DNA of 64,000 nucleotides, taken from IMG/VR virus record IMGVR_UViG_3300009537_002640, positions 1-64,000 of that record; one strand, given 5' to 3'. Position 1 is the first letter of the stretch. Every line of letters begins with the position of its first letter. Made by a program: the position numbers and the translations under genes. The notes below the pieces were generated by a model, which was not told the DNA's origin, searched no databases, and saw nothing but the letters and a program-made list of their open reading frames with translations. Positions 12,397-55,376 of this stretch are shown here, piece after piece.

Positions 12397-12897
12397 TTAA
12401 CCTACGTGGATAACATTATATCCGTATGCATCCAATATGAATCCCTCATTCATTAGTGATACTTTATTTACCACATCAACCCCTGATTCGGTTTTTATGT
12501 ACCATCTATCTTCATCTTCTTCTATCTCGATAACTGATGTGCCTGATTTTAGTCTACCATTTCCAACTGCTATAGATTGTACAGTATCAGATACATTAGG
12601 GCGGTAAGCTAGTGAAAAGGCATACGAGTTGTTGTTTGGATCTACCTCTTCTCCATTAAATGCTCTAACATTAGAGTCTACGGTAACAACAAAAGAATCA
12701 AATTCAAACAAATTTTCTACCGTTAATCTTACCTGTTTTTCATCTATTTGCGTCACTGATGTGGTAAAAGCACCATGAGTAAATGTGTAATTATCCGGGT
12801 CTATCAATTGATCATCAGATAGCATAACAGTATCAAAATGAACCTCTACGGTTACTGGCCATGGGCGATTGATAGCATTAATAACTTTTGGTCCCAT
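12397..12897 (-). CDS. 166 aa protein paralogous to a C-terminal segment of the giant protein (Ig-like plus beta-rich module)
   Basis: GPKVINAINRPW...EDEDRWYIKTESGVDVVNKVSLMNEGFILDAYGYNVI aligns by eye with GPRVLAAVNEPF...EDHTNWYLATSGGIDVVSKIELENVGFVLDGYGFNAI in the 3634 aa protein. Confidence 0.8.
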   Translation of the reverse strand: MGPKVINAINRPWPVTVEVHFDTVMLSDDQLIDPDNYTFTHGAFTTSVTQIDEKQVRLTVENLFEFDSFVVTVDSNVRAFNGEEVDPNNNSYAFSLAYRPNVSDTVQSIAVGNGRLKSGTSVIEIEEDEDRWYIKTESGVDVVNKVSLMNEGFILDAYGYNVIHVG

Positions 12898-15800: not shown

Positions 15801-17939
15801 AGGGTATTCATAATGTACTGGTATAGTAGTAAAATGCCACACATTGCCTGTCGTTCGTCCGCCATAACCAACAGTATCAATTCTCCAGTAATAAGTAGTC
15901 CCCGGATCAAGAGTAGGTAAAACAAAACTCAGCTCGGTTTGTGCACTTTGATAAGTACCCATAAGAATATCACTGGTTACCCCATCCTCATCTTTTCCAA
16001 AATACACCTCATAAGTATTGGCATCTACAGCCGCTCCCCAAGTTATAGACTTGCCTTCAAGCTCTACAAAAGTTGCGCCATTTTCTGGGGTAGGGCTATT
16101 AGGTTGCCCTGGAGGCGGAAGGAACACAACCGTGGTAAAGCTCCACACATCTCCAGTAGTAGTCCCACCTTCGCTAACCTCGTCGATTCTCCAATAATAA
16201 GTAGTGTTGAGTTCAAGAATACCTGGTTCATATGTTGTAGTAGCCTGATTACCTTTAAATGTACCGCCAGTACCATTAGTTACGTCGGTTTGATTGGTTC
16301 CAAAGTACACGTCACTGGTTAATGTGCCCTCACCAGTTACATCCCAACTCAAATCATCGGTAAGAAATATATCAGTGGCGCCATTAGACGGACTTGGGTT
16401 AGATGCCTGATCTGGAGGCGGCACAAATTCCTGGGTACTCATCACCAACAACATCATTTGCCTTAGATCATTTCCAGAAGTAGAAGGAGAGGTAGAATAT
16501 AGCTCCCAGGATTGTTCTACATTTGGAGTTTCACCAGTGAGCAATTCAAATATCCATGGACCAACTACGGAGCCGTCAGTGCCAGTGTAGTTAGAGTTGT
16601 CACCATGCCATTGAACAGCATATGATTGAGAATCCCATATCTTGGTTCCATCTCTGGTAACATCACCAGCAATACCTCTGCTAGTTGTGCTAAAACTTCC
16701 GTCACCTTCAGATTGCACAGAGCCAAATACTATAACTTCGCCTGTGGAGTCTGGAGTAAAACTAAGAGTAGAGCCGCGTTGGGTCCTATTAGTGTTAGCG
16801 GGTGGTGTAGAACCCTCATCAATATCGAAATATGTGAAATTAGCAAATGAATTTAGGCGTATAACAATAATTCTAGCTTCGTCTTTTTCGGCTGCTGAAA
16901 ATGAACGATATTCCGTAACAAGGGTAATTGGAGATGCTGGGGGAGCTGTCTTAATTCCCCATCCGGTATAGCAGTGTTCTTCGTTTCCTAAGTTACCGGT
17001 ACCGATACCTGATTGAAACACTGTGGTTGAGTTAGTAACGTCGCGAAGACGCATAATCATATTACCAGGTATGTTGTCAAAAGCCGCCACGCCTATACAC
17101 AAATAATCAGATGTACCGTCTGGAGTAAAGGTTAGTACTGCAGGATTCCAATCAGCAAATACCCAGGAAGAATTAGCTACTGTGTCAGATAGGTTTATTT
17201 TTTGGGACGCCCCGCTATTTGGTCTCACTAATGTATAGCTGGTACTTCCTTGTGTGCTAGCAAAAACGTTAAGTGGAGATGCTCCATTGATAGCATTAAT
17301 AATAGCCGTTCGTACAGTGCTAGAAGAATCCCCTGGATTCAGAGTAACAGCAATATTGCCAGGAGTTACCCCATCGCCACTAATATCGAATTCGAATGTC
17401 TGGACATTGCCTTCTGTGTCATCGATAGTAAATGTTTCACCATCAACTAGTGTAGACGCCGCCTGATTTTCAATTACAGCAGATGGTTGACTAAATGAAT
17501 GATGAACATGCTGTGAACGAGATGAATCGACAACGTGAAACCAGTCTTCATTCTCGACAAGTCCTGCAGAGTCTAGGTCTATAGCCATTAGTGAGCAGTT
17601 ACGAGCAACACCATTGTTTGAATTGCTGCGCTGAACTGTTAGAGTAATATCTTGCCCAGCTACAGCAGTCCACAATGTACAGCCTTTGTACTGGTGCACA
17701 TTGCTTCCGCCACCAGGAGAAGAATAATCACCACGGATATTATTGTCAGGAGATCCGCCGAAATTCAACCTACAGAATGCACCATGAGAGCCACCTAAGG
17801 TGTGAATAGTGCCAAAAACAAGATACCGGTGCCCTGCAACCAGTTCGGTGTTGCTGATAGTGCATACGGTTAATTCTGTAGAGCTTACAGAAAGCTGGGT
17901 GGTGTGATACGCCTTATCAAATAATACTGTAACAGCCAT
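12897..17939 (-). CDS. 1680 aa putative virion/receptor-binding protein with two FnIII-like repeats and several LamG (concanavalin-like) domains
   Basis: Two repeats ending TYYWRID...G.VW[SH]FTT. LamG motifs RWYHFAMTHDG...FDGDIADIRFSN and AWHYVAFTYS...FDGSIGAVRVSN. Confidence 0.75.
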   Translation of the reverse strand: MAVTVLFDKAYHTTQLSVSSTELTVCTISNTELVAGHRYLVFGTIHTLGGSHGAFCRLNFGGSPDNNIRGDYSSPGGGSNVHQYKGCTLWTAVAGQDITLTVQRSNSNNGVARNCSLMAIDLDSAGLVENEDWFHVVDSSRSQHVHHSFSQPSAVIENQAASTLVDGETFTIDDTEGNVQTFEFDISGDGVTPGNIAVTLNPGDSSSTVRTAIINAINGASPLNVFASTQGSTSYTLVRPNSGASQKINLSDTVANSSWVFADWNPAVLTFTPDGTSDYLCIGVAAFDNIPGNMIMRLRDVTNSTTVFQSGIGTGNLGNEEHCYTGWGIKTAPPASPITLVTEYRSFSAAEKDEARIIVIRLNSFANFTYFDIDEGSTPPANTNRTQRGSTLSFTPDSTGEVIVFGSVQSEGDGSFSTTSRGIAGDVTRDGTKIWDSQSYAVQWHGDNSNYTGTDGSVVGPWIFELLTGETPNVEQSWELYSTSPSTSGNDLRQMMLLVMSTQEFVPPPDQASNPSPSNGATDIFLTDDLSWDVTGEGTLTSDVYFGTNQTDVTNGTGGTFKGNQATTTYEPGILELNTTYYWRIDEVSEGGTTTGDVWSFTTVVFLPPPGQPNSPTPENGATFVELEGKSITWGAAVDANTYEVYFGKDEDGVTSDILMGTYQSAQTELSFVLPTLDPGTTYYWRIDTVGYGGRTTGNVWHFTTIPVHYEYPNSGDKVFSVVSIKGRVPPLNGVHTELHTDEGLIADGYTIAAENGQFSMSIPFSNQEPGTKIRAVSVSQASPDSPEVTVTLVQAAQALQPVVTRSGRRLQVDANTVALWPMNKTIRAESQTTGSAPKLNFDFSTIGGDVHDPPSNFTGDSSSETLRPEFKGTMTYYNFNVTSSYSRMWRSNDSSYVPQFSNGFTIKFRHRDEDVNPFTPTASNHTILYSVIDGTRWRVYGGVDTFTIINDQGSISFGLPNGIDFTKDWTEIEVRGYELDPGNTSSHYIELYINDQLTEQTWATTTSGTALYLGNAFTGASFISAEFDTFRLMEANPFIERIGTNVKGNSALDLRARLGCNLALADDNEVPFTHCARFDGSQGYMYSDDAAFDIGSPFTIEGWFRAHSVTGDYQYIVSKEAYNSNGWGVDLDANMNIRYNSANGSGFTLTGPQILTNRWYHFAMTHDGSNLSGYLDGELVDTISAGITANTTNSFAVGRRGSSATFYFDGDIADIRFSNVVRAPWEIYNTYHAADDPKIGFVEDEHTMVIWDFSEDPGRQIMTSNRSIPLAYNALASYADTDDFRRFFPAVGDSLLGNGSNDVFVSGGNIVLRNDHIGGDYSQVFIDSRGGLRVTGNFDFRIDMPSLPSRPQPWATSSTDRSEVRMRTASGVAVYIVYDEWFDGSNNRNRIYSYLYSTISTTEFGAVVPSSISTRFTREGNKWRTYYGINGAEPTTLLGQATGPEDDCWIQIGNVLRAEYATTGTFDYEWNNMQVRGFNNDERDGYLFNEIHGGSPRSEPLLSVSSSGEKARIFDGTADYVVIPANSEWDHEDLSVECWFQADTLHNGRLLNRIEVGGAGFSLGVGSDGYLAAEVMDNVGESVQLTLGTITAGAWHYVAFTYSFADKRLALYLDGRQLGQTENSLMTGNHVSTADVYMGIYWPSTDEYFDGSIGAVRVSNSVRTSTEIFERYKGARLKR

Positions 17940-18130: not shown

Positions 18131-19429
18131 TCAGAGTAATTCGGCGGCCTTCGTAGCCAACTCAGAGCGTTCTCCCTTCTTCAAACCTACATGAGCCGCG
18201 ATTGGCTCATCTTTGAACTTTTCAATAACATATGAGAGCCCATTATCTACCGCGTCGATAAAAGGATTATCTATCTGGTAGATGTCGCCTGTCAGGACGA
18301 CCTTAGAATCCTCTCCTACACGAGTGATAATAGTCTTTATTTCATGCCTTGTTAAATTCTGGCATTCATCTACTATGATAAAAGTCTTTGGAATAGAGCG
18401 CCCTCTGATATAGGTTAGCGCCTCGACCTGCAATCTACCGCCACGAGACTGTTCTAAGTCTAGATAGTCTGCGCCCTTTTCTGAAAATAGTAGGTCTAAG
18501 TTATCCTGCAAAGGCGCCATCCAGGGCTGCATTTTCTCTTCCTTTGTACCTGGCAGAAATCCCAAGTCTCTGCCCAAAGGCATAATTGGACGGGACATGA
18601 TTATCTTACGATAGGTATGGCTATCGTAGACCTGGCTAACACCAGCAGCTGCAGCCAGAAGTGTCTTACCACAACCAGCTTTACCTGTCAGAGTAACCAA
18701 TCTAATGTCAGGATTAAAGAGAGCATCGAATGCAAACGCCTGCTCTTTGTTACGAGGGTTTATTCCCCACACATTTGCTTTAGGCTCTATCTTGTGCAGC
18801 TGTCCACAAGAAAATCTAGCTAAGCCTGAGTGCTTAGGATTAACTTCTGAGCTTAATAGAACATACTGATTCTCATGGAATTGATGGACGAATCCACCAT
18901 CCATAAAGCCTAAATTATGAAACGTATCAATGTGAGATTCTGGAACCTGAACCTGAACACAACCGCTGTATATAGCTTCAGCTGTTTCTGCCACAGAGTC
19001 AGTATTGTAATCCTCAGCATCTACATTTAGGGCGTCACACTTCACCCGCATATTGATATCTTTGGTGATTAGTGCAACCACGCAGTCAGGGTGCGCTGAT
19101 TGCAATCCTAATGTAACGCTTATGATACGATTATCTGCCCGAGATGGGTCAAGGTGGGAAGGAACATTGTCCTTATGATTGATTTCAACACGAACCGTTC
19201 CACCTGCTGGTGTAGGCACACCTTCATGCAAATTACCCTGCTCACGCATTTCATCGAGTGAACGGATAACCATTCTTGCATGGCGTGCTACCTCATCTGG
19301 TCCGCTTTTCTTCTTGTCTAATTCATCTAAAACTACTAGGGGTATTACTACTTCATTATCATCAAATGCAAATAATGCTCTTGGGTCATGCAATAGGACA
19401 TTCGTGTCCAATACAAATATTTTGCTCAT
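18131..19429 (-). CDS. phoH: PIN domain-PhoH ATPase fusion (PhoH2/YlaK-like)
   Basis: N-terminal PIN (FVLDTNVLLHDP, VVLDELD, ADNRII, TKDINMR). C-terminal PhoH ATPase (GKAGCGKT, LGFLPG, YIRGRS, IIVDECQN, LTGDIYQID, RSELA). Confidence 0.93.
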   Translation of the reverse strand: MSKIFVLDTNVLLHDPRALFAFDDNEVVIPLVVLDELDKKKSGPDEVARHARMVIRSLDEMREQGNLHEGVPTPAGGTVRVEINHKDNVPSHLDPSRADNRIISVTLGLQSAHPDCVVALITKDINMRVKCDALNVDAEDYNTDSVAETAEAIYSGCVQVQVPESHIDTFHNLGFMDGGFVHQFHENQYVLLSSEVNPKHSGLARFSCGQLHKIEPKANVWGINPRNKEQAFAFDALFNPDIRLVTLTGKAGCGKTLLAAAAGVSQVYDSHTYRKIIMSRPIMPLGRDLGFLPGTKEEKMQPWMAPLQDNLDLLFSEKGADYLDLEQSRGGRLQVEALTYIRGRSIPKTFIIVDECQNLTRHEIKTIITRVGEDSKVVLTGDIYQIDNPFIDAVDNGLSYVIEKFKDEPIAAHVGLKKGERSELATKAAELL

Positions 19430-21263: not shown

Positions 21264-23681
21264 CTAACTGCACTTAGACCATCCACAGTCTTGACAAGTT
21301 ACGCAGCCTTCTTGATATATCATCGCCTCTGATTCACAAGAAGGGCATGTTTTATCGGATGTAACTCTTGTCCCATCCTCTATGTATTTCTTTAGAACTC
21401 GCGCCAATACTTTTGAGAAGCTGGTTAAATCACTATCAGGGTCTTTCTGCAGTTGCTCAACCAAGAATGATGGCTTTGCCCCATGTCTCAATGCAAGTGA
21501 TACCATCCTAGTATGTGTTTGGTATAGCACGTTGTCAAATACCTTTGTCACATTACGTATAGCTCCGTCTTCTCCAAAAGATAAATCGTATTTACTTTGT
21601 TTCTTAGTACTGGATGCTTTGGTAAGAACACCATCAGAAAACTTACGCGGTATCTCAACCATTTCAGATAGCCCGCCGAATACCTCATATGGTCTTCCGT
21701 TCATAAGTCCAACCAGAATAGTCCACTTCTCGCCCTTAACAGTTGCTTGGTGAATATGGCAAGGTAAGTCTTTGGGACGCTTTACTGCATCTCTGTAATC
21801 AAACTTATCTTTGCTACTCTCAGTAACCAGCACCCCACTACGAGAACCGTCTACGTAAACAGTAACGCCCTTCAGCCCCTCTTTCCAGCCTGCCATGTAA
21901 AGCTCACCAACAACTTCTGGCGGTGTACCACTGGGAAGATTAATGGTGCTTGAGATAGCGTGGTCTATGTGCCTTTGAATAGTGCCTTGAATCTGTACTC
22001 GACGCAACCAATCTATTTGGTCACTCTCCACAAAGAACTCAGGCAACTCAGCATCAGGCTTCAGCCCCTTAATATCAAGCCACTGTTTTACGTTATGATG
22101 GAAAACCTTAAACTCTTCCCACCTATCGCCCATATCATCCACAAAGTCATCAGGGGAGCCAGCATCGTTATGTGAACGCTTCTTGCGTCGAATATGCGCA
22201 TTCCTAAATACAGGCTCTAATCCAGAGCTAGTTTGAGATACTAGTGATACACTTCCTGTTGGGGCGTTGGTAAGATTAGCTATATTGCGCCTGCCGTTTT
22301 CTTTAACCAACTTAAGTACATCTACTGGTAAGTTCTTAATAAACTCATTATCCTTTTCTTTGTTCCAGTCCCATACAGGAAACGTGCCTCGTTCTCCTGC
22401 TAACCTGGCACTTTCAGAATATGATACCACCTTGAGAGTTTCGTAAATCCTATCTACTACCTCAAGAGCTGCATCCGAATCATACCTTAGTTGCAAACAT
22501 GCTAAAACATCAGCCAGACCATGAGTACCCAATCCGGTTCTACGGCCATCTTGTGCAGCCTTTAGAAGCTTAGTCCACATTGCTTTTTCATCAGGGGTGT
22601 CAGATATATTTAGGATATTCTCTAGCTTCTCAATCTCTAACTCAACCAGGTCATCTGATAATCTTTGTGCCATTGATACTGTATTCTCGAATTCTTCAAA
22701 ATCAAAGAACGCCTCATCTGTGAATTCGCCATGTACAAAGTTCTTTAGGTTGATAGAAATCAACCTACATGAGTCGTAAGCTGATAGAGGAATCTCAGAG
22801 CATGGGTTGGTAGAGATAGTCTTAAAGCCCACATCAGCATAAGCTTCGGCTGGCATATACTTCAAAATGTTATCCCACATTAACAAACCTGGCTCTGCAT
22901 AATTAGTTGCAGACTCCACTATTGTCTTCCAAAGTTCCTTGGCGTGAACCTTACGAGTTATCACTGGGTCATCGGAATCAATAGGGAAGCGCAGAGTGAA
23001 CATCTCGTCCTTTTCTACCGCTTCCATAAACTCATCCACCAGCCTGACTGAAACATTAGCTCCAGTGACTTTGGTAAGGTCGTTCTTCATTGTAACAAAT
23101 TTGAAAATATCGGGGTGCCGTACATCCATACTAATCATAAGAGCACCACGACGACCGTGTTGCCCAATCATACGACATGTATAGGAATACAAATCAGCAA
23201 AAGACCAAGCTCCAGTTGTGGTGCCAGCAGAATTATTCACTAGCGAGCCTTCGGGACGCAAAGTGGATATATCTAACCCGACACCACAACGGCGCTTGAA
23301 TAGATTAGCCAGCTCTTTACTGGCATCAACAATAGAAGATATTGTATCTTTTGGAGATTCCACTACGACACAATTTGACAAGGATACATTGACATAGTTG
23401 TTGCCAATACCCATCATAGGAGAGCCCTGAGGAACAATGTGTTTAAAATGTGCAAGCTGTGCGTAAATCTGTTCTTCAGACAACGCACGGTTTCCCCCAA
23501 ATTTCTTCTCCATCCTGGCAAACTCTTTAGCTAAACGCCGATGCATATCATCTGGCGTCTTCTCCATAAGATTGCCCTCTTTATCTTTAAGAGCATACTT
23601 GCTCATCCAAACATTAGCGGCTAATTGGTCGCCGCCGAAATATTCAAGTGTACTTTCTAATACCTCATTCTTGTCGTGCAT
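21264..23681 (-). CDS. nrdJ: Class II (adenosylcobalamin-dependent) ribonucleotide reductase
   Basis: SLSNC, RRGALM, TNPCSEIPL, APTGS.S, DHAISSTINLP, KGVTVYVDGSR. C-terminal TSCPD-like domain and Zn ribbon (CPSC...EGCVTCQDCGWSKCS). No small subunit is present. Confidence 0.93.
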   Translation of the reverse strand: MHDKNEVLESTLEYFGGDQLAANVWMSKYALKDKEGNLMEKTPDDMHRRLAKEFARMEKKFGGNRALSEEQIYAQLAHFKHIVPQGSPMMGIGNNYVNVSLSNCVVVESPKDTISSIVDASKELANLFKRRCGVGLDISTLRPEGSLVNNSAGTTTGAWSFADLYSYTCRMIGQHGRRGALMISMDVRHPDIFKFVTMKNDLTKVTGANVSVRLVDEFMEAVEKDEMFTLRFPIDSDDPVITRKVHAKELWKTIVESATNYAEPGLLMWDNILKYMPAEAYADVGFKTISTNPCSEIPLSAYDSCRLISINLKNFVHGEFTDEAFFDFEEFENTVSMAQRLSDDLVELEIEKLENILNISDTPDEKAMWTKLLKAAQDGRRTGLGTHGLADVLACLQLRYDSDAALEVVDRIYETLKVVSYSESARLAGERGTFPVWDWNKEKDNEFIKNLPVDVLKLVKENGRRNIANLTNAPTGSVSLVSQTSSGLEPVFRNAHIRRKKRSHNDAGSPDDFVDDMGDRWEEFKVFHHNVKQWLDIKGLKPDAELPEFFVESDQIDWLRRVQIQGTIQRHIDHAISSTINLPSGTPPEVVGELYMAGWKEGLKGVTVYVDGSRSGVLVTESSKDKFDYRDAVKRPKDLPCHIHQATVKGEKWTILVGLMNGRPYEVFGGLSEMVEIPRKFSDGVLTKASSTKKQSKYDLSFGEDGAIRNVTKVFDNVLYQTHTRMVSLALRHGAKPSFLVEQLQKDPDSDLTSFSKVLARVLKKYIEDGTRVTSDKTCPSCESEAMIYQEGCVTCQDCGWSKCS

Positions 23682-23719
23682 TGTCCTTATTTCTCCTGGT
23701 AGTATATTTTAGATACACT

Positions 23720-23760
23720 AATCCCTACAAGGGGGATACAACCTTAAACTTGTAGGGATT
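23720..23760. other. Intergenic hairpin between the sigma factor gene and nrdJ
   Basis: 12-bp perfect inverted repeat aatccctacaag / cttgtagggatt with a 17-nt loop; no U-tract. Confidence 0.65.
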
Positions 23761-23765
23761 GAGAA

Positions 23766-24416
23766 TTATCCGCTAAGTTCGCCAAGTAGTTGACTCTTGC
23801 GCAACTTAGAGATTGCCTTATTCTTGATTTGTCGGATACGCTCGTGGGTAAGATTGAACATAGGCCCTATCTCACGCAAAGTTTGTGGCTGACGGCCATC
23901 CAAACCGAAGATAAGCCTTACAATCTCACGGTCACGTTCTGGAAGCTCGCCAAGCACTTCTGCTATACGCTCATCACGTTCCTTGACAAAGAATTGCTCT
24001 TCGGGAGTTTCCTCCACCTGCTCTTCTTCCTTGCCAATTTCAGAAGGCTCTGCGTACACAACGCGAGTCTTGTCGGGATTGTACACGACATCGAAACGAC
24101 TTGCTGCACGCTTTACACTATGGCGAATCCATTGCTCCGAAAAGACGAAGAAGTTTGGGAAACGGTTATGGTCAAAGCGACGTACTGCCTTCACAAGACC
24201 AATAAACCCTTCCTGGACCAAATCTTCATAATTAGGGAAACTTCTATATGGTTTAGTTACACTATATACCAAAAAAGAAAGTTCGGTAACTATTCTGTTC
24301 TGGACCTTTTCTACCTGCTTCTCCAATTGATCACTTGACAGAGTGCCATCGGCCTTCAAATCATCAATACTACGAAACAGGTTCATTGCCTCTTCGTTGC
24401 TCATGTAACGACTCAT
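23766..24416 (-). CDS. Compact sigma70-family RNA polymerase sigma factor (regions 2 and 4)
   Basis: Region 2 YEDLVQEGFIGLVKAVRRFD...WIR. RpoD-like region 4 TLREIGPMFNLTHERIRQIKNKAISKLR. 216 aa, region 3 largely absent. Confidence 0.93.
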   Translation of the reverse strand: MSRYMSNEEAMNLFRSIDDLKADGTLSSDQLEKQVEKVQNRIVTELSFLVYSVTKPYRSFPNYEDLVQEGFIGLVKAVRRFDHNRFPNFFVFSEQWIRHSVKRAASRFDVVYNPDKTRVVYAEPSEIGKEEEQVEETPEEQFFVKERDERIAEVLGELPERDREIVRLIFGLDGRQPQTLREIGPMFNLTHERIRQIKNKAISKLRKSQLLGELSG

Positions 24417-24419
24417 AAC

Positions 24420-24977
24420 TTACTCCTCTTCGCTTACATCTTCAACTCTAAATACTTCTTTTAATTTTCCATCTTTCCAAACACGCACTGTGTTGGTCTC
24501 CTCACTAAGAGTTAATACACCAATTACATCGTCGCGTAAAGAAAAACTTGCTGCGGCTTTATGACGTGTGCCACAATCTTCAGGTGTATCTAACATTGGG
24601 TTTGCAACAACTAGATACACCCCCGCCCCTACAATCTGCCCAGACCTATCGACAACAACAGCGCCGTCATGGGGTGGGCGTGAGTACTCTATGACACACT
24701 GCTTTCCTGCCTCTGTGTCTATCATTCTAAGAGCCTCAATCGGATTCTGCTTAGGCTTCATTTGAACCATGCCATCTACTCTAGGTTCTTTTTCAAAATC
24801 TCCTAAGACAACAAGAGCACCCAGCGGATCTTCTATACCAGATGCAACAGCTTTGGCTAAGTCTTTCAGAATTTCAAAGATAGTTCGTTCAAACTTCTCA
24901 TTATTCTTGGCAAAGCTAAATTGCATACTAAAGTCCACATAAGGTGCCTCACTTTGCTTACTCTTTTCTTCTGTCAT
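24420..24977 (-). CDS. Stand-alone diadenylate cyclase (DisA_N/DAC domain, DacZ-like)
   Basis: GALVVLGD, NP, catalytic HDGAVVV, GAGVYL, GTRHKAAA (RHR-like motif), LSEE...VRVWKDG. Confidence 0.85.
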   Translation of the reverse strand: MTEEKSKQSEAPYVDFSMQFSFAKNNEKFERTIFEILKDLAKAVASGIEDPLGALVVLGDFEKEPRVDGMVQMKPKQNPIEALRMIDTEAGKQCVIEYSRPPHDGAVVVDRSGQIVGAGVYLVVANPMLDTPEDCGTRHKAAASFSLRDDVIGVLTLSEETNTVRVWKDGKLKEVFRVEDVSEEE

Positions 24978-24978
24978 T

Positions 24979-25482
24979 TCATTTTCTTTCTGTATCCTCT
25001 TTGGTAACTATTTTCATAGTAAAACCATCTATTACCATACGGTTGTTATCAAAGGAATACTCAATCGTGTCGTATGTGTGTCCTTGTTTTCTTCCATCCC
25101 AAAATACCATGGTGAAATTAGAGTTTTCAACAATGTGCTCATTTACGGTATTATCAAAGAATCCTCTTCCGTCGTCTGTTGTGGGCTTAATAATGCTTAG
25201 TGCATCAGCATATTGGTAAACCCTATTTAAGTCCTCTTTCTGTTCTTCGTACCAGTGCTGTCCCAAAACCTCTGGCAGATAGGGGAGAAATAAATGATAT
25301 TGTTTCTTGGTCTTCAGGCAATGCTTAGCCGCCCAGAGACCGACCCCGATGTTCACAGATATGTTATACACCAACTCATCGCCATATTGAAAGCTCAAAG
25401 TGTCAAGAGTTTCCTGGACACGCTTATCCTCCGCCTGACTAAATACATCAGGCGTATGTCCAACTACACCAACCTTGTACAT
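24979..25482 (-). CDS. SLOG-superfamily protein (YspA/DUF1273-like)
   Basis: VGVVGH start, GVGLWAA, LFLPY, YADA, NEHIVENS..MVFWDG...GHT..TIEY pattern typical of YspA-type SLOG. Confidence 0.65.
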   Translation of the reverse strand: MYKVGVVGHTPDVFSQAEDKRVQETLDTLSFQYGDELVYNISVNIGVGLWAAKHCLKTKKQYHLFLPYLPEVLGQHWYEEQKEDLNRVYQYADALSIIKPTTDDGRGFFDNTVNEHIVENSNFTMVFWDGRKQGHTYDTIEYSFDNNRMVIDGFTMKIVTKEDTERK

Positions 25483-25491
25483 ATATACCCT

Positions 25492-25680
25492 CTACTTGTT
25501 ATTTTCTTCTAGTTCTTCGAGCATCGATTGTAACGCCAGCTGTATAATCTCCACATTCTGCGTACTCATTATAGATTGTAATCGCAGTTGGAGTGTCTTG
25601 GCGTCTATTTCGACTCTCTGTTTACCATTAGAGGTTTTGGTCGTTTTCCAAAGACCCATCCTATTCATTGTTATCCTCAC
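25492..25680 (-). CDS. Small hypothetical protein
   Basis: Fills the gap between spoVR and SLOG; likely start ATG downstream of GGTGAGG. Confidence 0.55.
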   Translation of the reverse strand: MRITMNRMGLWKTTKTSNGKQRVEIDAKTLQLRLQSIMSTQNVEIIQLALQSMLEELEENNK

Positions 25681-27150
25681 CTATAAGATGTCAAATCCCG
25701 CTTCATCAAATACAAATGCTACCGGGTCTGCATCATCACCATAAGTTTTAAGTTCGACTGGTCCTCCCCATAGTTCATATATATATCCCATGGTTTTCTC
25801 AGTATACTTCTCATCTAAAGGGCCAAAGTCGTCTGAATGTTGGAGCATTAATATATCTCCATCTACCTGATTTACTGTCACAAGAGGTGCTCCATAATTA
25901 ATGGTGGGGCGAATTATATTTTCGATAATCTTATCTAACTCTCTATCTTTCAATTCAATAATACCGTACTCTTCGGGCAAATCATCTTCGTCCATACCTG
26001 GTTCTCGTTCATGTCTATATCCATAGTTGAACAAGCCCAGACTTGTAGCTAACTCAGGTGTTAGATAGTTACGTAAGAACGATGCGTCATCTTCTTCAGC
26101 CGCGACCTCTATTACCTTTTGTATGCCAGTGATATCTGATTCACCATCTTTGTACTTCTTATCCCACCTCTCTCGAATATCAGTAAACACTTTGAACCCT
26201 AAATAGTAAGGATTGATTCGGAAAGGGTGTCCTGGACTTACCACTGAAGCGTGGCACTTACAAAACTCTAAATGTTCCTCCTCACTTGTTTCATGATACT
26301 TAAACATTAGCTCCGCATGCCAAAAGGAAGCAAAGCCTTCATTCATAATCTTGGTCATAACAATGGGATAGAAGTAGTACGACTCTTCTCGTATAATACC
26401 AAGTATATCCTTCTCCCATTCTTCTAACGGAGCATAATTAGTAAGAAACCAAAGCAGGTCTCGCTCAGGATGCGGAGGTAGCTTTTCACCTTCCACCCGA
26501 TATCTTATGCTTCTCTTATTATTGTTGATATTTAGTAGATCGTCGAACTCATCCCTATGTACTTTTTCTTCTATTATGTGCTTATCAGGATAGCGTTTTC
26601 TATATACGCCTTTATGCCAATCTATGTGATTATCTAAAGCAAAACCTATATCCATTAGGTGTTCTACTTTCTCTAACCCATATTGCTCTACATAATCATC
26701 AACTCTAGCTGCTCTTTCTGCAGCTCTATAAATCATATTTCGGTCTGAACCCTTAAACATATGATTGTGCTTAAAAAAATGCACATGCCCAAAGACATGT
26801 GCTGCGACCATGATGTTAATTACATCCAAATTTGTATTCAAAAGGAAAGCATAAGATGGGTCATTATTGAATACAATCTCATACACTTTTGATAGCCCCA
26901 TCTCACCATATATCTTTTGGTGGTCATAGGAGCGACCGTATGACCAGTGGCGCGCTCTAACTGGTAAGCCATATGAACAAGCCTCCAGCATGATGTCTCT
27001 ATTAACATATTCAAAGATAGTAGGGAAGAAATCTAATCCCTCTTTACGGGCTAGCTCTTCCATGTCTTTGATTGCTTTAAATACGTATTCTTGGCCCATA
27101 ATAAATATCCTTACACAAGCATTGTGCCTGCCATAGTTACTGTTTTCCAA
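25681..27150 (-). CDS. spoVR: SpoVR/YcgB family protein
   Basis: YGLPVRARHWSYG, YEIVFNNDPSYAFLL, AHVFGHVHFFKHN, TKIMNEGFASFWH, INPYYLG, FLRNYLT, LWGGPVELKT. Confidence 0.95.
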   Translation of the reverse strand: MENSNYGRHNACVRIFIMGQEYVFKAIKDMEELARKEGLDFFPTIFEYVNRDIMLEACSYGLPVRARHWSYGRSYDHQKIYGEMGLSKVYEIVFNNDPSYAFLLNTNLDVINIMVAAHVFGHVHFFKHNHMFKGSDRNMIYRAAERAARVDDYVEQYGLEKVEHLMDIGFALDNHIDWHKGVYRKRYPDKHIIEEKVHRDEFDDLLNINNNKRSIRYRVEGEKLPPHPERDLLWFLTNYAPLEEWEKDILGIIREESYYFYPIVMTKIMNEGFASFWHAELMFKYHETSEEEHLEFCKCHASVVSPGHPFRINPYYLGFKVFTDIRERWDKKYKDGESDITGIQKVIEVAAEEDDASFLRNYLTPELATSLGLFNYGYRHEREPGMDEDDLPEEYGIIELKDRELDKIIENIIRPTINYGAPLVTVNQVDGDILMLQHSDDFGPLDEKYTEKTMGYIYELWGGPVELKTYGDDADPVAFVFDEAGFDIL

Positions 27151-27545
27151 TCGTGATTTAACAACTCTCGTATAGCTGGTTTATCCACTCTCTGATACTC
27201 ATCAATTAGCAGGTGTATATCTCTTGTTCTAATCCCATCAAAGCATCTATCATACATAGAGGTTGCTGCTGTCACACGCATTCTATCCACCCCTGTTCTA
27301 TTAACAAAAGCTTTGACATATTTTTGGGTGGGAACTACCACCATAAAATACTCATTGCGTGAATCAAATATATAAGCAAGTTTGCCCAGCATATTAGTTT
27401 TGCCTGACTGCCGAGGTACAGTACTAACAAAAGCACCATATTCTTGCCACCAAATATCTATCGCGGATGTATACTTTTTGATAGAGGGTAGATAAATATC
27501 ATGATGATATTTCCATCTATACAGCTCTAAATCCATATAGTTCAT
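27111..27545 (-). CDS. Minimal P-loop NTPase (terminase/SF-helicase-like ATPase fold, 144 aa)
   Basis: Walker A VPRQSGKT, FMVVVPT strand, Walker B LLIDE; overlaps both neighbours. Confidence 0.7.
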   Translation of the reverse strand: MNYMDLELYRWKYHHDIYLPSIKKYTSAIDIWWQEYGAFVSTVPRQSGKTNMLGKLAYIFDSRNEYFMVVVPTQKYVKAFVNRTGVDRMRVTAATSMYDRCFDGIRTRDIHLLIDEYQRVDKPAIRELLNHDWKTVTMAGTMLV

Positions 27546-28717
27546 TCTTCCTTACCCTCGATTCCTAAGAACTGTTTCAAACAAGTATAAATGTCTTCTT
27601 TCTGCTCAATAGCTGCTGTAAGAAAACGCGGATGGTCTATACTCTTCTCAAACTCTTGATGAAGGGTAGACCATCTAAACCCACTGCCCCCATAGTTGTA
27701 AAAGCTATCAGTATTAATTTCTCCGTACCCCACCGCACTGCACAGTTCTAGCAACTCTTTTACCAGCTCAACGCACTTCTCATTATCAGATGGCCAGTTG
27801 TCCCCATCACTAAAAGAGAATACGTAATTGTTCCATTGAGCAGGGGGATGATTAGCCTCTATATGCTCTAAGGCCAGCTTGAATGCTGAGCTACACATCG
27901 TTCCACCAGAGTTAGATATCTTGAAGAAGTTCTCTTCAGGAACCACAGCAGCTCTGGTATCGTGAGCAATAAAGATTAACTCTACGAAGTTATACTTGGT
28001 CTTACAAAAGTGCGCCAACCAAAAGAAGAATGATTTAGCTATGTACTTCTTATCGTCATCCATACTGCCTGAGCGGTCCATTAGGAAATACACAGCGGCA
28101 TTGGAGTGATATTCTTTCTCTAAGTCCCATATCTTGTAACGTAAATCTTCTGGGCGGATGTTCTTAATTTCCGCCTTGCCCTTTTTAGCATTACGCTTCA
28201 TGTTCTCGAAGATGGTGCGCTTCTTGTCTACGTTAGACAATGGGCCAACTTCTGCCAAGTCAGTGAACTTAATGTTCTCTGTCTCAATCTCTACTGCACT
28301 ATCCTTAGCCTCAAGCCAGGGCAAGTCAAGGTCTTCTAGCATCATCTGTATGATTTCAGCTAGCTCTACTTCTTCCTCGTAGATTTCATCACCAGCCTGA
28401 TCATCTGCCTGATTGCCAGTGCCTTTACCCTTACGCCCTGTGCCATCATGAGCAATCATATCTCCGGGCTTAGCATCGCCTTCGCCTTGGCCTACACCCT
28501 CTTTATTCTTATCATCAGCGTGCTTAAACCTATACGTATCTAGAAACTTGATAGGAATCTTAACCTTCCTCTTTCCATCAGAGGAGATAATGCTGGCATC
28601 ACTAACCAAATCCTTCAGATTCTCTCGTATGGCCTTTTTAACACGCTGGGAGTGTCGTGCAGAGTCACGCTTGCCGCGTTTACGCATTCCCCAGATATCT
28701 AGTAAGCTATCGCTCAT
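27542..28717 (-). CDS. yhbH: YhbH/YeaH (DUF444) vWA-domain protein
   Basis: RHSQRVKKAIRENL, KVKIPI, GQGEG, LEDLDLPWL, MIDAS motif LMDRSGSM, SGGTMCSSA, FSDGDNW. Confidence 0.93.
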   Translation of the reverse strand: MSDSLLDIWGMRKRGKRDSARHSQRVKKAIRENLKDLVSDASIISSDGKRKVKIPIKFLDTYRFKHADDKNKEGVGQGEGDAKPGDMIAHDGTGRKGKGTGNQADDQAGDEIYEEEVELAEIIQMMLEDLDLPWLEAKDSAVEIETENIKFTDLAEVGPLSNVDKKRTIFENMKRNAKKGKAEIKNIRPEDLRYKIWDLEKEYHSNAAVYFLMDRSGSMDDDKKYIAKSFFFWLAHFCKTKYNFVELIFIAHDTRAAVVPEENFFKISNSGGTMCSSAFKLALEHIEANHPPAQWNNYVFSFSDGDNWPSDNEKCVELVKELLELCSAVGYGEINTDSFYNYGGSGFRWSTLHQEFEKSIDHPRFLTAAIEQKEDIYTCLKQFLGIEGKEE

Positions 28718-28724
28718 TTTAACC

Positions 28725-30719
28725 TCATGTGGTTTTAGACATTAGTGAGTTCACATATCGTAGCAATTGATTTGCTGAATCGACATTATACCCATACTTA
28801 TCAACCAACGTCTCGATAACCTGATTGATTTTCTTCAACGCCTCAGGGTCAGGATTACGTGAGCTAACGGTCAGACGAATGATATCTGCACGCTCGTCGA
28901 ACAGCTGCTTCTCAAGAGCCTCTTTCAATTTAGCATGACTCTGATAGTCAAACTCAACACCATCGCTTCTACGCTGAAGTACCTTACGAAGTGCTTCCTG
29001 CCTAAAACTATCCTTAGTAGCATCACTGATTCCTACCTTCTCTTCGATACTTCTCATTAGCCCATGGTCTGGTTCGTGGTGCTCACCAAACTCATCAACC
29101 AAATCTGTATCATCTAGATAGGCAGCTACGTTATCTACGTAGTTGTTCAACAGGTTGTTGATTTCCTTATCGAAGTTGACAAAGAATGCCTTCTGAACTT
29201 CGGTCTTAGCCATCTTGGTATATTCCTCAATGACAGTCATGATAATCTCATCAAAGCGTTCGAGGTCTTCCTTACCAAACTTGGCACTGCTCTCAAAGTT
29301 TTCCTTAATAGACCTCAGTACATCAATAGGAGTTATGCAACGCAAGTTGTGCTTACTGAAGCAATCTGCAATACAGTTAAAGATGTAACGTGGACTCACT
29401 CCATCCATACCCTCTCTATCTGCCTCTTCCTTAATGTCCTTCAAGTCTTCCTTAGTGAAGCCATCGACATCGCTACTGTTATATAGATGTAGTTTCTTTA
29501 GTAGAGTAAGATTCTGGTCCTTACCTGGCTCTAGACGACTCATAACTGCAAACATAGATGCTACCTTAAGAGTAAGTGGAGCAACATGTACATCACCGAA
29601 ATCGGCTTCAGCAACCAGCTTCTTGTAAATCTTCTCTTCTTCATCTAAGATTAAGTTATACGGAGCCTTCACAACAATGATACGGTCATGCAACGCTTCC
29701 ATCTTAGTGTCCGCCAAGAAACGAGTATATTCGGTTTCATTGGTGTGCGCAAGAATAAACTCATCAGCGTAAATAAGTGGGAAACGCTCAGTTTTAATGG
29801 TCTTTTCTTGTGCTAAGGTTAGTAGTACATGAAGAAACTTAGGGTCAACCTTTAGCATTTCTATCATTTCCATAATGCCACGGTTTGCTACGTTTAATTC
29901 GCCATCAAACTTGTAAGCACGGGGGTCTGATTCAACACCAAACTCGCCTAACTTACTAAAGTCTACAGAGCCTACAAGCTCGGTAATAGATTGGTTCTTA
30001 GTATCGCCTGGTAAGAATGTACCTATGCCGATACGATTGGTTTCTGAAATGAACAGGCGTTTCACTGGCAACTTTAGCCATTCGCCATTATATTTATGGT
30101 CTAGTAGGTGTTGCACTGGCGGGGATAGTCTTGCTAACGGGTCAATCTTAATGCCGTACTTTTCTCGAAACATTGGTCGTAGGTCGACCGGAACAGCATT
30201 AAGTGGATTCTCGTGCATTGGAGAATCTGTAAGGGCATAAATCGCACCTTCTTTAGTGCGAGACCACGCTTCAAGCCCGTGCTTTAGAAGTGTAGCCATT
30301 TGACTCTTACCAGAGCTTGTTGGCCCGTACAGTAGCAAAATACGACGGCCAACTTGAGAGCCACTGGCTGCAGCCTTTAGGTACTTCACTACCTTATGAA
30401 TCATGTTATCAACGCCAAACAACTCCTGGTTAAAAAACTTGTACCTGGGAATCGTTTGTGTTTTGTCTTCCTCATCGTAGTCCACACCTGCACTGAGTAT
30501 CATATCTAATACTCGGGAATGGGCTAACTGAGCAAGTTTAGGGTTTTCTTGAACCAAAGGAATGAATTCTTCCAGGGTACCTTCCCACTCATGAGTATCC
30601 TGTTTCCTGCTAAACTCGGCGATATCTTTAAAGATATCTTGTTTAGTTCCTTGTCCCTCTAATGTCTTTTCATCGGACATAGTATTACCTCCACTGTTAA
30701 GAACCTTGCTTCTTGACAT
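28725..30719 (-). CDS. prkA: PrkA/YeaG family AAA+ protein
   Basis: Walker A LYGPTSSGKS, SPMHENPL, ESDPRAYKFDGELNVANRG, AHTNETEY, EALHDR, EGMDGVSPRY. There is a second in-frame ATG at 30680, also with GGAGG. Confidence 0.95.
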   Translation of the reverse strand: MSRSKVLNSGGNTMSDEKTLEGQGTKQDIFKDIAEFSRKQDTHEWEGTLEEFIPLVQENPKLAQLAHSRVLDMILSAGVDYDEEDKTQTIPRYKFFNQELFGVDNMIHKVVKYLKAAASGSQVGRRILLLYGPTSSGKSQMATLLKHGLEAWSRTKEGAIYALTDSPMHENPLNAVPVDLRPMFREKYGIKIDPLARLSPPVQHLLDHKYNGEWLKLPVKRLFISETNRIGIGTFLPGDTKNQSITELVGSVDFSKLGEFGVESDPRAYKFDGELNVANRGIMEMIEMLKVDPKFLHVLLTLAQEKTIKTERFPLIYADEFILAHTNETEYTRFLADTKMEALHDRIIVVKAPYNLILDEEEKIYKKLVAEADFGDVHVAPLTLKVASMFAVMSRLEPGKDQNLTLLKKLHLYNSSDVDGFTKEDLKDIKEEADREGMDGVSPRYIFNCIADCFSKHNLRCITPIDVLRSIKENFESSAKFGKEDLERFDEIIMTVIEEYTKMAKTEVQKAFFVNFDKEINNLLNNYVDNVAAYLDDTDLVDEFGEHHEPDHGLMRSIEEKVGISDATKDSFRQEALRKVLQRRSDGVEFDYQSHAKLKEALEKQLFDERADIIRLTVSSRNPDPEALKKINQVIETLVDKYGYNVDSANQLLRYVNSLMSKTT

Positions 30720-30743
30720 ATTGATCCTCCGTCTAAATTGGGT

Positions 30744-30780
30744 ATATGTATATTATACACCAACTTTTTGGCACTCTTAA
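30744..30780 (-). promoter_or_regulatory. sigma70-type promoter (TTAAGA-17 nt-TATAAT) upstream of prkA, overlapped by palindrome TGTATA-N-TATACA
   Basis: -35 at 30775-30780, -10 at 30752-30757. The 17-mer is identical to 20313-20329. Confidence 0.78.
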
Positions 30781-31041
30781 CTATTTTTCGCCATATAAAT
30801 CTAAGAAATGCTTATCTTTTCCCTGGCCCATTTCTTTCCTAATGCGGTCAGCATCAGGTGCTATTTTCTGATTGTACAAATCTTTAGCACTTAGCCATGT
30901 TCTATTATTCCACGCAGATAAAAGCTTTTTAAACTCTGTGCATTCGCATTCTGGACATGTAATTTCCGGAGGATCCTTACCACGCTGGAACTTCTCTAAC
31001 ACGAGTTCACATTTTTGACACTGGAAATTAAATAACGGCAT
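30781..31041 (-). CDS. FmdB-family zinc-ribbon protein
   Basis: MPLFNFQCQKC...CPECEC motif. Confidence 0.8.
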   Translation of the reverse strand: MPLFNFQCQKCELVLEKFQRGKDPPEITCPECECTEFKKLLSAWNNRTWLSAKDLYNQKIAPDADRIRKEMGQGKDKHFLDLYGEK

Positions 31042-55279: not shown

Positions 55280-55376
55280 ATTTCTTTTCTCTTAACATTA
55301 TCTTGCCTATTATAATAACTGACGCTGGCACCACTACTGCTGCAATCATTATGACTGCTCCTATATAACCTATCAT
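55272..55376 (-). CDS. Small single-pass membrane protein (34 aa)
   Basis: Manual translation MIGYIGAVIMIAAVVVPASVIIIGKIMLREKKYD; exactly bridges two genes. Confidence 0.55.
   Translation of the reverse strand: MIGYIGAVIMIAAVVVPASVIIIGKIMLREKKYD

Follow-up and report, generated by a model that had tools for sequence, protein, structure and literature searches.

Results

The stretch of DNA analysed here (the window) comprises positions 1 to 64,000 of the IMG/VR record IMGVR_UViG_3300009537_002640, a viral contig of 206 kb. On its minus strand, eight open reading frames between 23766 and 30719 form a tight block, which is preceded by one further conserved gene. In the order of transcription the features are:

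30781..31041 (-), 86-aa Zn-ribbon protein (FmdB-like, PF09723), conserved upstream neighbour of prkA
30720..30780 (-), 61-bp intergenic gap with a promoter-like site and a GGTGTAT motif
28725..30719 (-), PrkA/YeaG-family AAA+ protein, 664 aa, Walker A GPTSSGKS
27542..28717 (-), YhbH/YeaH (DUF444) vWA protein, 391 aa, MIDAS motif DRSGS
27111..27545 (-), 144-aa single-domain RecA-like P-loop NTPase, Walker A PRQSGKT, Walker B LLIDE; its start overlaps the stop of DUF444 by 4 nt
25681..27099 (-), SpoVR/YcgB, 472 aa from the ATG at 27099
25492..25680 (-), small conserved protein of about 55-62 aa (about 55 aa if it starts at the ATG at 25659), no family match
24979..25482 (-), YpsA-type SLOG protein, 167 aa
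24420..24977 (-), stand-alone minimal diadenylate cyclase (DAC), 185 aa
23766..24416 (-), sigma-70 family factor, 216 aa, regions 2 and 4
23701..23760 (-), two adjacent stem-loops just 3' of the sigma stop codon (12-bp stem at 23720-23760, 7-bp stem at 23701-23719), no T-tract

The gene block described by the sequence-only reading is real, and all eight open reading frames exist on the minus strand at the stated coordinates. The internal junctions are overlaps or gaps of about 21 bp or less, whereas only eight intergenic gaps of 35 bp or more exist in the 64 kb, and two of these (30720-30780 and 23682-23765) bracket the block exactly. The same boundaries are present in the related phage loci L187, L003 and L191 (L numbers denote the loci used for comparison), and a gap at the position of 30720-30780 is kept in L187 and L003. 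The conserved block extends one gene further upstream than first proposed, since a homologue of the Zn-ribbon protein (Pfam 1.4e-10), whose gene abuts prkA in most relatives, was found directly upstream of prkA in L003, L008, L014, L019, L026, L187, L189, L192 and L194.

Some details of the earlier description had to be corrected. The proposed sigma70 promoter at 30752-30780 (TTAAGA-17-TATAAT, also readable as GTGCCA-N11-TATAAT) is there, but promoter-like sites are no commoner than chance in this region (33 found, 30.8 expected), and the site on its own is not statistically above chance. The hairpin at 23720-23760 is real and very stable (MFE -21.5 kcal/mol, z = -5.4, matched by 0 of 200 shuffles), and hairpins are also predicted at the same position in L187; however, without a T-tract it is not a canonical intrinsic terminator. 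The block had been described as free of hairpins up to this point, but one terminator-like hairpin does lie inside it (26781-26802), as a by-product of the codons for the invariant AHVFGHVHFF motif of SpoVR. SpoVR most likely starts at the ATG at 27099 and not at the TTG at 27150. The "mini ATPase" is not an AAA+ protein but a single RecA-like P-loop domain.

Profile searches supported the assignment of the three core proteins. PrkA matched PF08298 (7.8e-112) and PF06798 (7.2e-69), as well as the solved structure 9xip (E 1.5e-127), and its Walker A motif is kept in 88 of 88 viral copies. DUF444/YhbH was found at 9e-97 and scored 440 bits against TIGR02877 (spore_yhbH), almost at the Bacillota equivalog cut-off of 468; the MIDAS motif is present in 87 of 89 viral copies. 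SpoVR was found at 7.7e-106 together with SpoVR_C, and residues H101, H105, E146, E254 and H261 are invariant, but a confident structural model has no PDB neighbour, so that its structure gives no indication of its role.

The P-loop NTPase has only 9 clusters in 5.8 billion proteins. It lies directly after DUF444 and is followed by SpoVR wherever that flank is present. Its AF2 model (pLDDT 88) matched RecD/Dda domain 1A, DEAD domain 1 and thymidine kinase in a Foldseek search. Homologues of the small protein sit at the same position in L003, L187, L191, L192, L194 and L195, with 33-64% identity to the window in the three loci compared (L003, L187, L191).

The SLOG protein scored 35.5 bits against PF06908 (cut-off 27.7), and a profile hit the B. 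subtilis YpsA structure 2NX2 at E 1e-3. It evolves fast, with 34-45% identity between siblings. Compared with YpsA (DUF1273) and its homologues in Bacillus (Tsamsa-like), Streptomyces and Chryseobacterium phages it shares the GxxGVxxWA motif region, but it is only 24-30% identical to the phage homologues and sits in a different genomic setting.

The DAC scored 65.9 bits against PF02457 (cut-off 27; 3.2e-18) and aligns to CdaA structures. Its DGA and SEE(T) motifs are intact, while RHR reads RHK; in the subfamily the third residue of this motif is K or I, so that its activity or product could differ. It shares the DAC fold, with DGA, the H of RHR and SEE, with CdaA and DisA. Like PanS, the minimal DAC of the PanDA defence system, it is a bare DAC domain without regulatory modules, but it is phage-encoded, carries an N-terminal extension of about 40 aa with an invariant DFSFQF-type motif, and is a neighbour of SpoVR, not of a 2TM-beta effector. 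Unlike CdaA, it is not known to carry a transmembrane anchor. The DAC subfamily has 348 metagenomic clusters, several of them from Tara Oceans samples.

The sigma factor matched sigma-70 r2 and r4 in Pfam and phrog_351. Its best NCBIfam matches are RpoD-type (about 99 bits), while SigB/F/G scored 54 bits against a cut-off of 234. Thus, unlike the sporulation-like sigmas of Bacillus phages, it scores as a generic RpoD-like and not as a SigF/G-type factor. Two divergent subtypes occupy the same slot in the clade.

Distribution in phages and bacteria

The same eight-gene order recurs in at least two other phages (L187/L188 and L192), and related contigs reach 395 kb. Between the window and L187 the triad proteins are 79-85% identical and DAC and sigma 72-75%, which indicates purifying selection. 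The core (PrkA-DUF444-SpoVR followed by the DAC) is present in 19 viral contigs, and the DAC directly follows SpoVR in 18 of 18 informative IMG/VR contigs. In contrast, sigma directly follows the DAC in only 9 of 19 DAC-bearing IMG/VR contigs. The DAC occurs without SLOG in 18 contigs, and SLOG occurs without the DAC in L003/L194, L191, L195, L014 and L021. The DAC is dispensable and looks lost more than once, being absent from several lineages of the SLOG group (L003/L194, L191, L195, L014/L021) and from L018; L191 keeps what looks like a decayed remnant.

The triad as such is not new in phages. It gave 399 IMG/VR hits and has already been annotated in the Thermus phages phiYS40, TMA and Lalka, in Ralstonia phage RsoM2USA and in huge phages such as LR756511. 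These copies represent different, independently acquired clades (29-37% PrkA identity), and none has a DAC, sigma factor or mini NTPase attached; LR756511 has only an unrelated YAcAr SLOG about 3.7 kb beyond SpoVR. Viral PrkA falls into at least five separate clades, namely clade A, clade B (39 rows), clade C (8 rows), a huge-phage group and the Thermus phages, and the triad is complete in 79 of 85 viral or phage loci. This argues for repeated capture of the whole pathway by phages. What is new is the linked DAC, which was found neither in isolate phage genomes nor in PHROGs or the searched literature; no description of the whole combination was found either.

The phage triad resembles the bacterial PrkA/YeaG (SpdA), YhbH/YeaH and SpoVR/YcgB pathway in its full-length family matches, gene adjacency and intact Walker A and MIDAS motifs. 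It differs in being encoded by a virus, in the P-loop NTPase inserted between YhbH and SpoVR, and in the SLOG, DAC and sigma genes that follow. Among 80 cellular triad loci, none has a SLOG or sigma gene within 8 kb and only one has a DAC, which lies 6 kb away on the opposite strand.

Discussion

The sequence-only reading proposed that the block is one module that sets host dormancy or stress state, in a combination not previously described in a phage. This interpretation is only partly supported. Its refuting conditions included a cellular origin of the contig and the lack of linkage of the DAC, SLOG and sigma genes to the triad in related genomes; the contig is viral, and these genes are linked to the triad in related phages. 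However, all linkage evidence comes from one phage clade with conserved synteny and is not independent evidence of functional coupling.

An integrated dormancy or sporulation system, in which the triad remodels proteins, the DAC makes c-di-AMP, the SLOG senses it and the sigma factor reprograms host transcription, seems unlikely. It would fit with a YhbH closest to the Bacillota sporulation type, with the grouping of clade-A PrkA with Bacillota-type PrkA, with the requirement of PrkA for sporulation, and with the existence of phage sigma factors that alter sporulation (10.1101/2021.11.12.468384); moreover, YpsA is best known from Bacillus. Yet SLOG and DAC are not co-inherited and do not represent a synthase-sensor pair, the sigma factor is not of the sporulation type, the triad is widespread in non-sporulating bacteria, and the open-ocean samples in which DAC-subfamily proteins occur are an unlikely setting for endospore-forming hosts. 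Recent work points to protein turnover and osmotic stress, rather than dormancy as such, as the role of the triad (PMC13684143; PMC13001217). Somewhat less doubtful is the possibility that the genes are independent host-takeover or auxiliary genes in the early/middle replication and nucleotide-metabolism region of a collinear phage lineage, where the triad works as a unit and DAC, SLOG, sigma and the small ORFs have unrelated jobs. The separate occurrence of DAC and SLOG, the absence of the DAC from several lineages, the direct succession of DAC and sigma in only 9 of 19 DAC-bearing contigs and the lack of the add-ons in cellular triads speak for this view, as do the homing endonucleases and inteins that insert freely between and within the genes, and RNR, dUTPase and PhoH, which are equally syntenic. 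On the other hand, the DAC keeps its position right after SpoVR across PrkA divergence down to 53-60% identity despite many insertions elsewhere, the mini NTPase sits inside the triad and overlaps DUF444, and the boundaries of the block are conserved.

A role in counter-defence is also unlikely on present evidence. In this view the minimal DAC would supply c-di-AMP to keep host guard systems silent, since PanDA-like systems fire when c-di-AMP is sequestered or depleted, and the triad may also degrade host defence proteins. PanDA uses a minimal, constitutive DAC whose c-di-AMP represses a toxin and senses the phage sponge Acb4 (PMC13640721), and the phage DAC is likewise minimal and has no regulatory domain. 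However, no cassette protein matched a PADLOC defence model beyond generic domains, no sponge gene was identified here, PanDA was described mainly in Pseudomonadota, to which the host need not belong, and c-di-AMP can also activate an antiviral TIR-SAVED effector, which would make a phage DAC risky. It is very unlikely that the contig is cellular or a mis-binned host fragment with an ordinary host locus, although the window holds no clear capsid, portal or terminase gene and the nearest non-viral PrkA (53%) is on a Chloroflexota MAG contig. All 71 ORFs lie on one strand with almost no intergenic DNA; phage-type DnaB/DnaC, primase, RNR, dUTPase and PIN-PhoH are present, as are giant lectin-domain ORFs that match a virion structural protein family; relatives carry a phage lysozyme, inteins and homing endonucleases; there were no tRNA, rRNA or Rfam hits; and the add-ons are almost entirely missing near cellular triads, as described above.

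We therefore tentatively favor, with less than even confidence, a phage-run version of the host's YeaG/PrkA starvation-induced protein-turnover pathway with lineage-specific add-ons. In E. coli, YeaG is needed for starvation-induced, largely non-specific cytoplasmic proteolysis that supplies amino acids and ATP (PMC13684143), and yeaG, yeaH and ycgB are cofit in six bacteria (10.1101/072470). PrkA of B. anthracis is tied to osmotic stress and to the partners ProA and EzrA, which matches thematically a c-di-AMP synthase and a division-related YpsA; the activity of PrkA is disputed, however, and the B. anthracis protein showed negligible protease and kinase activity in vitro (PMC13001217). Our analysis demonstrates gene content, motif integrity, conserved order, the viral setting and repeated acquisition, whereas every biochemical activity, co-transcription and any coupling between the triad and the add-ons are inferred from sequence alone. 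The linkage of DAC, SLOG and sigma may also reflect genome collinearity, as RNR and PhoH are syntenic in the same clade.

In this model, the add-ons ride in the same transcription block. The regulator-less DAC is predicted to make c-di-AMP constitutively and, if the host uses this messenger, would reset K+/osmolyte balance and possibly damp the stringent response. The YpsA-like SLOG would, by analogy with the cell-division phenotype of YpsA, block cell division, and the sigma factor would direct host RNA polymerase to phage promoters; a mini P-loop NTPase wedged between YhbH and SpoVR and a small helical protein complete the set. The cassette lies between the replication genes (DnaC/DnaB) and the nucleotide-salvage genes (RNR, dUTPase, PIN-PhoH) of this uncultured large phage. 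Most likely, the phage expresses the triad during infection to drive ATP-dependent turnover or remodelling of host cytoplasmic proteins, and the effect would be to free amino acids and energy for phage synthesis in nutrient-poor hosts.

Gene content and boundaries of the cassette

In the IMG/VR contig IMGVR_UViG_3300009537_002640 (206,495 bp), all sizeable ORFs of the first 64 kb lie on the minus strand, and eight of them follow each other at 23766-30719. The Pfam assignments match the gene list of the sequence-only reading, and its observation is confirmed and extended. In order, these ORFs are:

PrkA (minus strand), with the AAA_PrkA (PF08298, 374 bits) and PrkA C-terminal (PF06798, 233 bits) domains at full length
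DUF444/YhbH (minus strand), 325 bits
144-aa protein (minus strand), with only sub-threshold P-loop hits
SpoVR plus SpoVR_C (25681-27099, minus strand), 355 bits
62-aa ORF (minus strand), without a family match
YpsA-type SLOG (minus strand), PF06908, 35.5 bits against a cut-off of 27.7
diadenylate cyclase (DAC) domain protein (minus strand), PF02457, 65.9 bits against a curated cut-off of 27
sigma-70 factor with regions 2 and 4 (minus strand)

A comparison with NCBIfam showed that the YhbH copy is closest to the Bacillota sporulation type (TIGR02877, 440 bits against a cut-off of 468). The sigma factor scored best against RpoD-type models (about 99 bits) and poorly against the sporulation-type SigB/F/G model TIGR02980 (53.9 bits against a cut-off of 234), so that it does not classify as a sporulation-type sigma factor. 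The SLOG does not reach the NCBIfam equivalog (27 bits against 165). A search for near-identical DNA in isolate phages returned none, and comparison with the PADLOC models gave nothing specific, with only the generic sigma domain of MzaA and a weak P-loop hit.

Junctions inside the cassette are overlaps or gaps of about 21 bp or less. Our ORF chain has 71 genes in the 64-kb window and only eight intergenic gaps of 35 bp or more, two of which sit exactly at the two ends of the cassette. The upstream gap holds the TTAAGA-17-TATAAT site that had been read as a promoter; however, promoter-like sites in this region are as frequent as in shuffled sequence (33 against 30.8), and so are terminator-like sites (7 against 7.5). 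The downstream gap holds a hairpin with a 12-bp stem directly after the sigma stop codon (z = -5.4 against shuffles), but without a T-tract. The one terminator-like hairpin inside the cassette (26781-26802) is produced by the codons of the invariant AHVFGHVHFF motif of SpoVR and was rejected as a coding by-product.

Other candidate promoter elements were also considered. The sequence TTGGTGTAT occurs three times, all within 23766-30780, once in the gap upstream of prkA and twice inside conserved codons of SLOG and DAC; since four of 100 shuffles match that count, it was not retained as an internal promoter. An identical GTGCCA-N11-TATAAT arrangement occurs at 30752-30774 and 55309-55331 (minus strand), in two of the eight rare intergenic gaps, and might represent a phage promoter class, although two matches are also given by 8 of 100 shuffles and the finding is suggestive only. 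In the close relatives L187, L003 and L191 (related phage loci) the same two boundaries are again intergenic gaps, and a GGTGTAT motif recurs in them. In the window, L187, L003 and L191 together, seven of the 17 occurrences of this motif fall in the 2.2% of sequence that is intergenic (odds ratio 31, p = 4e-8). The motif, often as ATAGGTGTAT, is strongly enriched in intergenic DNA 20-60 nt upstream of start codons and may be a promoter element, possibly for the phage sigma factor. Two of the seven occurrences lie in the SLOG-sigma spacers of L003 and L191, which may be relics of the DAC gene. Co-transcription of the eight genes is plausible from the spacing, the bracketing gaps and the 3' hairpin, but it remains inferred from sequence alone.

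Viral origin of the contig

One condition set beforehand as a test was whether the contig is cellular, with the cassette as an ordinary host locus, and several lines of evidence agree that it is viral. The window carries phage-type DnaB, a DnaC-like loader, primase/helicase, dUTPase, thymidylate kinase, RNR and a PIN-PhoH fusion. Two giant ORFs on the minus strand (1490-12394, 3634 aa; 12897-17939, 1680 aa) have ConA-like lectin (Laminin_G_3) and Ig-like domains; the lectin part of the larger one matches the PHROG family 'virion structural protein', and they are probably fibre or adhesin proteins. tRNA scans and Rfam searches, including the c-di-AMP riboswitch, gave no hits in the window. Relatives are IMG/VR contigs of 66-395 kb that contain a phage lysozyme, inteins and homing-endonuclease genes. 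The cellular alternative is also contradicted by 80 cellular PrkA loci, of which none has a SLOG or sigma gene within 8 kb and only one has a DAC, on the opposite strand.

Host inference did not resolve the host: there are no tRNAs, and the PIN-PhoH protein is only 35-38% identical to its nearest isolate-phage copies, in Bacillus and Arthrobacter jumbo phages. A PIN-PhoH fusion gene lies a few kb from the triad both in the window's viral PrkA clade (clade A) and in the unrelated viral clade B (window 18131-19429, minus strand; L185 14233-15555; L039 14803-16116). The RNR next to the cassette (window 21264-23681; L187 11398-13896; L003 17714-20188) is only 29-31% identical between close relatives whose flanking genes are 72-85% identical, and the dUTPase lies before the RNR in L187, L191 and L195 but after it in the window, which looks like non-orthologous replacement or rearrangement. 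The relatives are heavily invaded by selfish elements (L185 7336-9990; L038 8006-11035; L008 13047-14627; L015 4534-6483 and 9590-11200; L003 12063-13223), with a LAGLIDADG intein inside SpoVR and an over-long PrkA (1009 aa), HTH+DUF7487+Vsr-like homing-endonuclease ORFs between the triad genes, and in L003 an HTH ORF plus a CapR-homology ORF. The cassette of the window has none of these.

The PrkA-YhbH-SpoVR triad in phages

The triad in phages is not new. A tblastn search found PrkA in 17 GenBank phage records, and the triad is annotated in Thermus phage phiYS40 and present in Lalka8, in RsoM2USA (listed in PMC8504454) and in the 595-kb phage LR756511. PHROGs has families for all three proteins, and IMG/VR holds 399 PrkA-encoding stretches. 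In 85 viral or phage loci, DUF444 accompanies PrkA in 83 and SpoVR in 79. The record of Enterobacter phage LAU1 (L007, MN688132, 1-3308) begins with yeaG and yeaH next to tail genes, which is probably host flank included in a prophage-derived record and not a phage triad.

A FastTree of 144 PrkA sequences places the viral copies in at least five separate clades. Clade A, which contains the window, has 15 rows and support of 100, and is sister to a Chloroflexota MAG contig and then to Bacillota-type PrkA, whereas clade B has 39 rows and is sister to RsoM2USA. This pattern indicates repeated capture of the entire pathway, although the tree is a quick one with some long branches and the deep placements are provisional. 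Clade B (L039-L085) is a second, larger group of viral contigs that carries DUF444-SpoVR-PrkA, followed by three unknown ORFs, an Hc1 histone-like protein and PIN-PhoH, with a trypsin-like peptidase gene upstream.

Genes linked to the triad in clade A

Clade A has the order Zn-ribbon, PrkA, DUF444, SpoVR, then DAC and/or SLOG, then often sigma, then RNR and PIN-PhoH. A DAC-led scan of IMG/VR found 19 contigs, and in all 18 with upstream sequence the DAC directly follows SpoVR. Since the scan pattern was subfamily-specific and all hits belong to one clade, this shows conserved linkage and not independent association. Sigma directly follows the DAC in 9 of these 19 contigs, and it follows the SLOG in every SLOG-bearing locus. 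The PrkA phylogeny splits clade A into a DAC group and a SLOG group, and the window belongs to the SLOG group.

Searching with the 144-aa protein (the mini NTPase) found only nine clusters in 5.8 billion proteins. In every locus recovered it directly follows DUF444, usually with a 4-nt overlap, and SpoVR follows it wherever the downstream flank is present. These searches also recovered two further phages with the complete eight-gene order, L187/L188 and L192, the latter with an extra insert of about 940 bp between prkA and DUF444.

Table. Protein identity of L187 to the window
Protein: identity
PrkA: 79%
DUF444: 83%
SpoVR: 85%
DAC: 72%
Sigma: 75%
Small ORF: 64%
NTPase: 50%
SLOG: 45%

DAC and SLOG are both present only in the window, L187/L188 and L192. 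The DAC is without SLOG in 18 contigs, and the SLOG is without the DAC in L003/L194, L191, L195, L014 and L021, so that the two genes are not co-inherited as a synthase-sensor pair. In the DAC-less siblings L191 (4290-4385) and L003 (16946-17034) the SLOG-sigma spacers look like decayed remnants of the DAC 3' end. In L191 the spacer still reads as a decayed DAC C-terminus (AIGVLTLGE...) with an internal stop; the tblastn E is only 0.43, but we keep it as suggestive because it lies at the exact syntenic position and is colinear with the DAC C-terminus. L003 keeps a shorter trace. The simplest history is that the DAC was ancestral to clade A and was lost several times, while the NTPase, small ORF and SLOG were gained in one sublineage. 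DAC and SLOG are therefore not an obligate pair.

Sequence and predicted structure of the individual proteins

PrkA aligns end to end with a solved PrkA structure (9xip, residues 44-662). Its Walker A motif reads GPTSSGKS, and GPxxxxK[ST] is present in 88 of 88 viral copies; the corresponding lysine (K108 in B. subtilis) is needed for ATPase and function (PMC9512850). DUF444 carries the MIDAS motif DRSGS, present in 87 of 89 viral copies.

The DAC aligns with CdaA structures (E 1.5e-8). The catalytic DGA motif (HDGAV in the window) is found in 10 of 11 subfamily members, with DGS in one, and the SEE(T) motif is kept. The RHR motif, however, is not intact: R and H are invariant, but the third R is replaced, with GTRHK in the window and L187 and GTRHI in the other ten aligned members. 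The protein has no regulatory or membrane domain, but has a conserved N-terminal extension. No DAC was found in isolate phage genomes or in the PHROG families. A search of a phage sequence collection gave 15 unannotated fragments, from fecal samples or labelled as Listeria or Staphylococcus phage, which we judged to be host or metagenomic DNA and not phage genes. In metagenomes the subfamily has 348 clusters at 90% identity, several of them from Tara Oceans samples, on contigs up to 352 kb.

A SLOG profile hits B. subtilis YpsA (2NX2, E 0.0011), and related DUF1273 genes exist in Bacillus, Streptomyces and Chryseobacterium phages. The mini NTPase, which had been called a mini ATPase, gave only sub-threshold AAA_30 and AAA_19 hits, which are helicase-type P-loops. 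Its model (pLDDT 88) is confidently predicted as one RecA-like domain, nearest to RecD/Dda domain 1A, DEAD domain 1 and thymidine kinase (TM 0.5-0.66); it is not AAA+. The AlphaFold model of SpoVR is likewise confident (pLDDT 90), but the search for a protease-like fold found no neighbour in the PDB (best E 0.15). Its invariant residues H101, H105, E146, E254 and H261 hint at a metal site, by inference only. One structure prediction was made without rows from GenBank phage loci. Sequence searches against the PDB with SpoVR, the SLOG (as a single sequence) and the mini NTPase gave nothing.

Possible function of the cassette

The genes yeaG, yeaH and ycgB are cofit in six bacteria and so act in one pathway (10.1101/072470). 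B. subtilis PrkA is an ATP-dependent, Lon-like protease (PMC9512850), and E. coli YeaG (SpdA) is required for starvation-induced, largely non-specific degradation of cytoplasmic proteins, which supplies amino acids and ATP (PMC13684143). The literature is divided, since B. anthracis PrkA is needed under osmotic stress and co-purifies with ProA and EzrA, yet showed negligible protease or kinase activity in vitro (PMC13001217). In the most likely reading, which remains tentative, a phage that brings its own copy would gain a way to convert host protein into building blocks in nutrient-poor cells. This fits the position of the cassette beside nucleotide-salvage genes and PhoH, and also the repeated capture of the pathway by large phages.

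For the linked genes, a constitutive DAC would be inferred to push K+ and osmolyte handling towards export and low turgor, and could damp Rel-dependent (p)ppGpp synthesis. A YpsA-like protein could stop division, and the sigma factor probably serves phage transcription in general. Alternatively, the DAC could be counter-defence, since two preprints report that c-di-AMP made by a minimal DAC represses the toxin of the PanDA defence system (PMC13640721) and that c-di-AMP can also activate a TIR-SAVED effector. A bolder reading, which we consider unlikely, is that a family of marine and sediment jumbo phages encodes the first viral c-di-AMP synthases, functionally coupled to a virus-owned PrkA/YeaG proteolysis machine. 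The phage would then itself trigger a starvation-type proteome-recycling programme and, with c-di-AMP, hold the osmotic balance and stringent response of the host (or c-di-AMP-guard immunity) in a state that favours virion production.

The interpretation offered by the sequence-only reading is thus partly supported: the combination is viral, conserved and, in the literature searched, undescribed, but treating the eight genes as one dormancy-control system over-reaches. Our analysis establishes the gene content, the domain matches and motifs, the gene order and its recurrence in related phages, whereas protease, kinase or ATPase activity of the phage PrkA, a starvation phenotype, synthesis of c-di-AMP by the DAC, co-transcription and the roles of the linked genes are inferred. 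The triad itself was already present in phages, and the phage DAC family is the most novel element.

The PrkA/YeaG-YeaH-YcgB pathway is among the most conserved poorly understood stress modules in bacteria, and in 2026 it was tied to bulk protein degradation in starved E. coli. Its capture by phages at least five separate times, provisional as the deep placements are, is strong natural evidence that it does something immediately useful inside an infected cell, and it also offers compact, diverged, intein-free versions for biochemistry. The DAC would be the first virus-encoded c-di-AMP synthase family that we could find, and would extend viral manipulation of cyclic-nucleotide signalling to a housekeeping messenger that has just been shown to have immune roles. 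Given the size of this subfamily, and since named members come from Tara Oceans samples, any effect on host physiology could matter ecologically.
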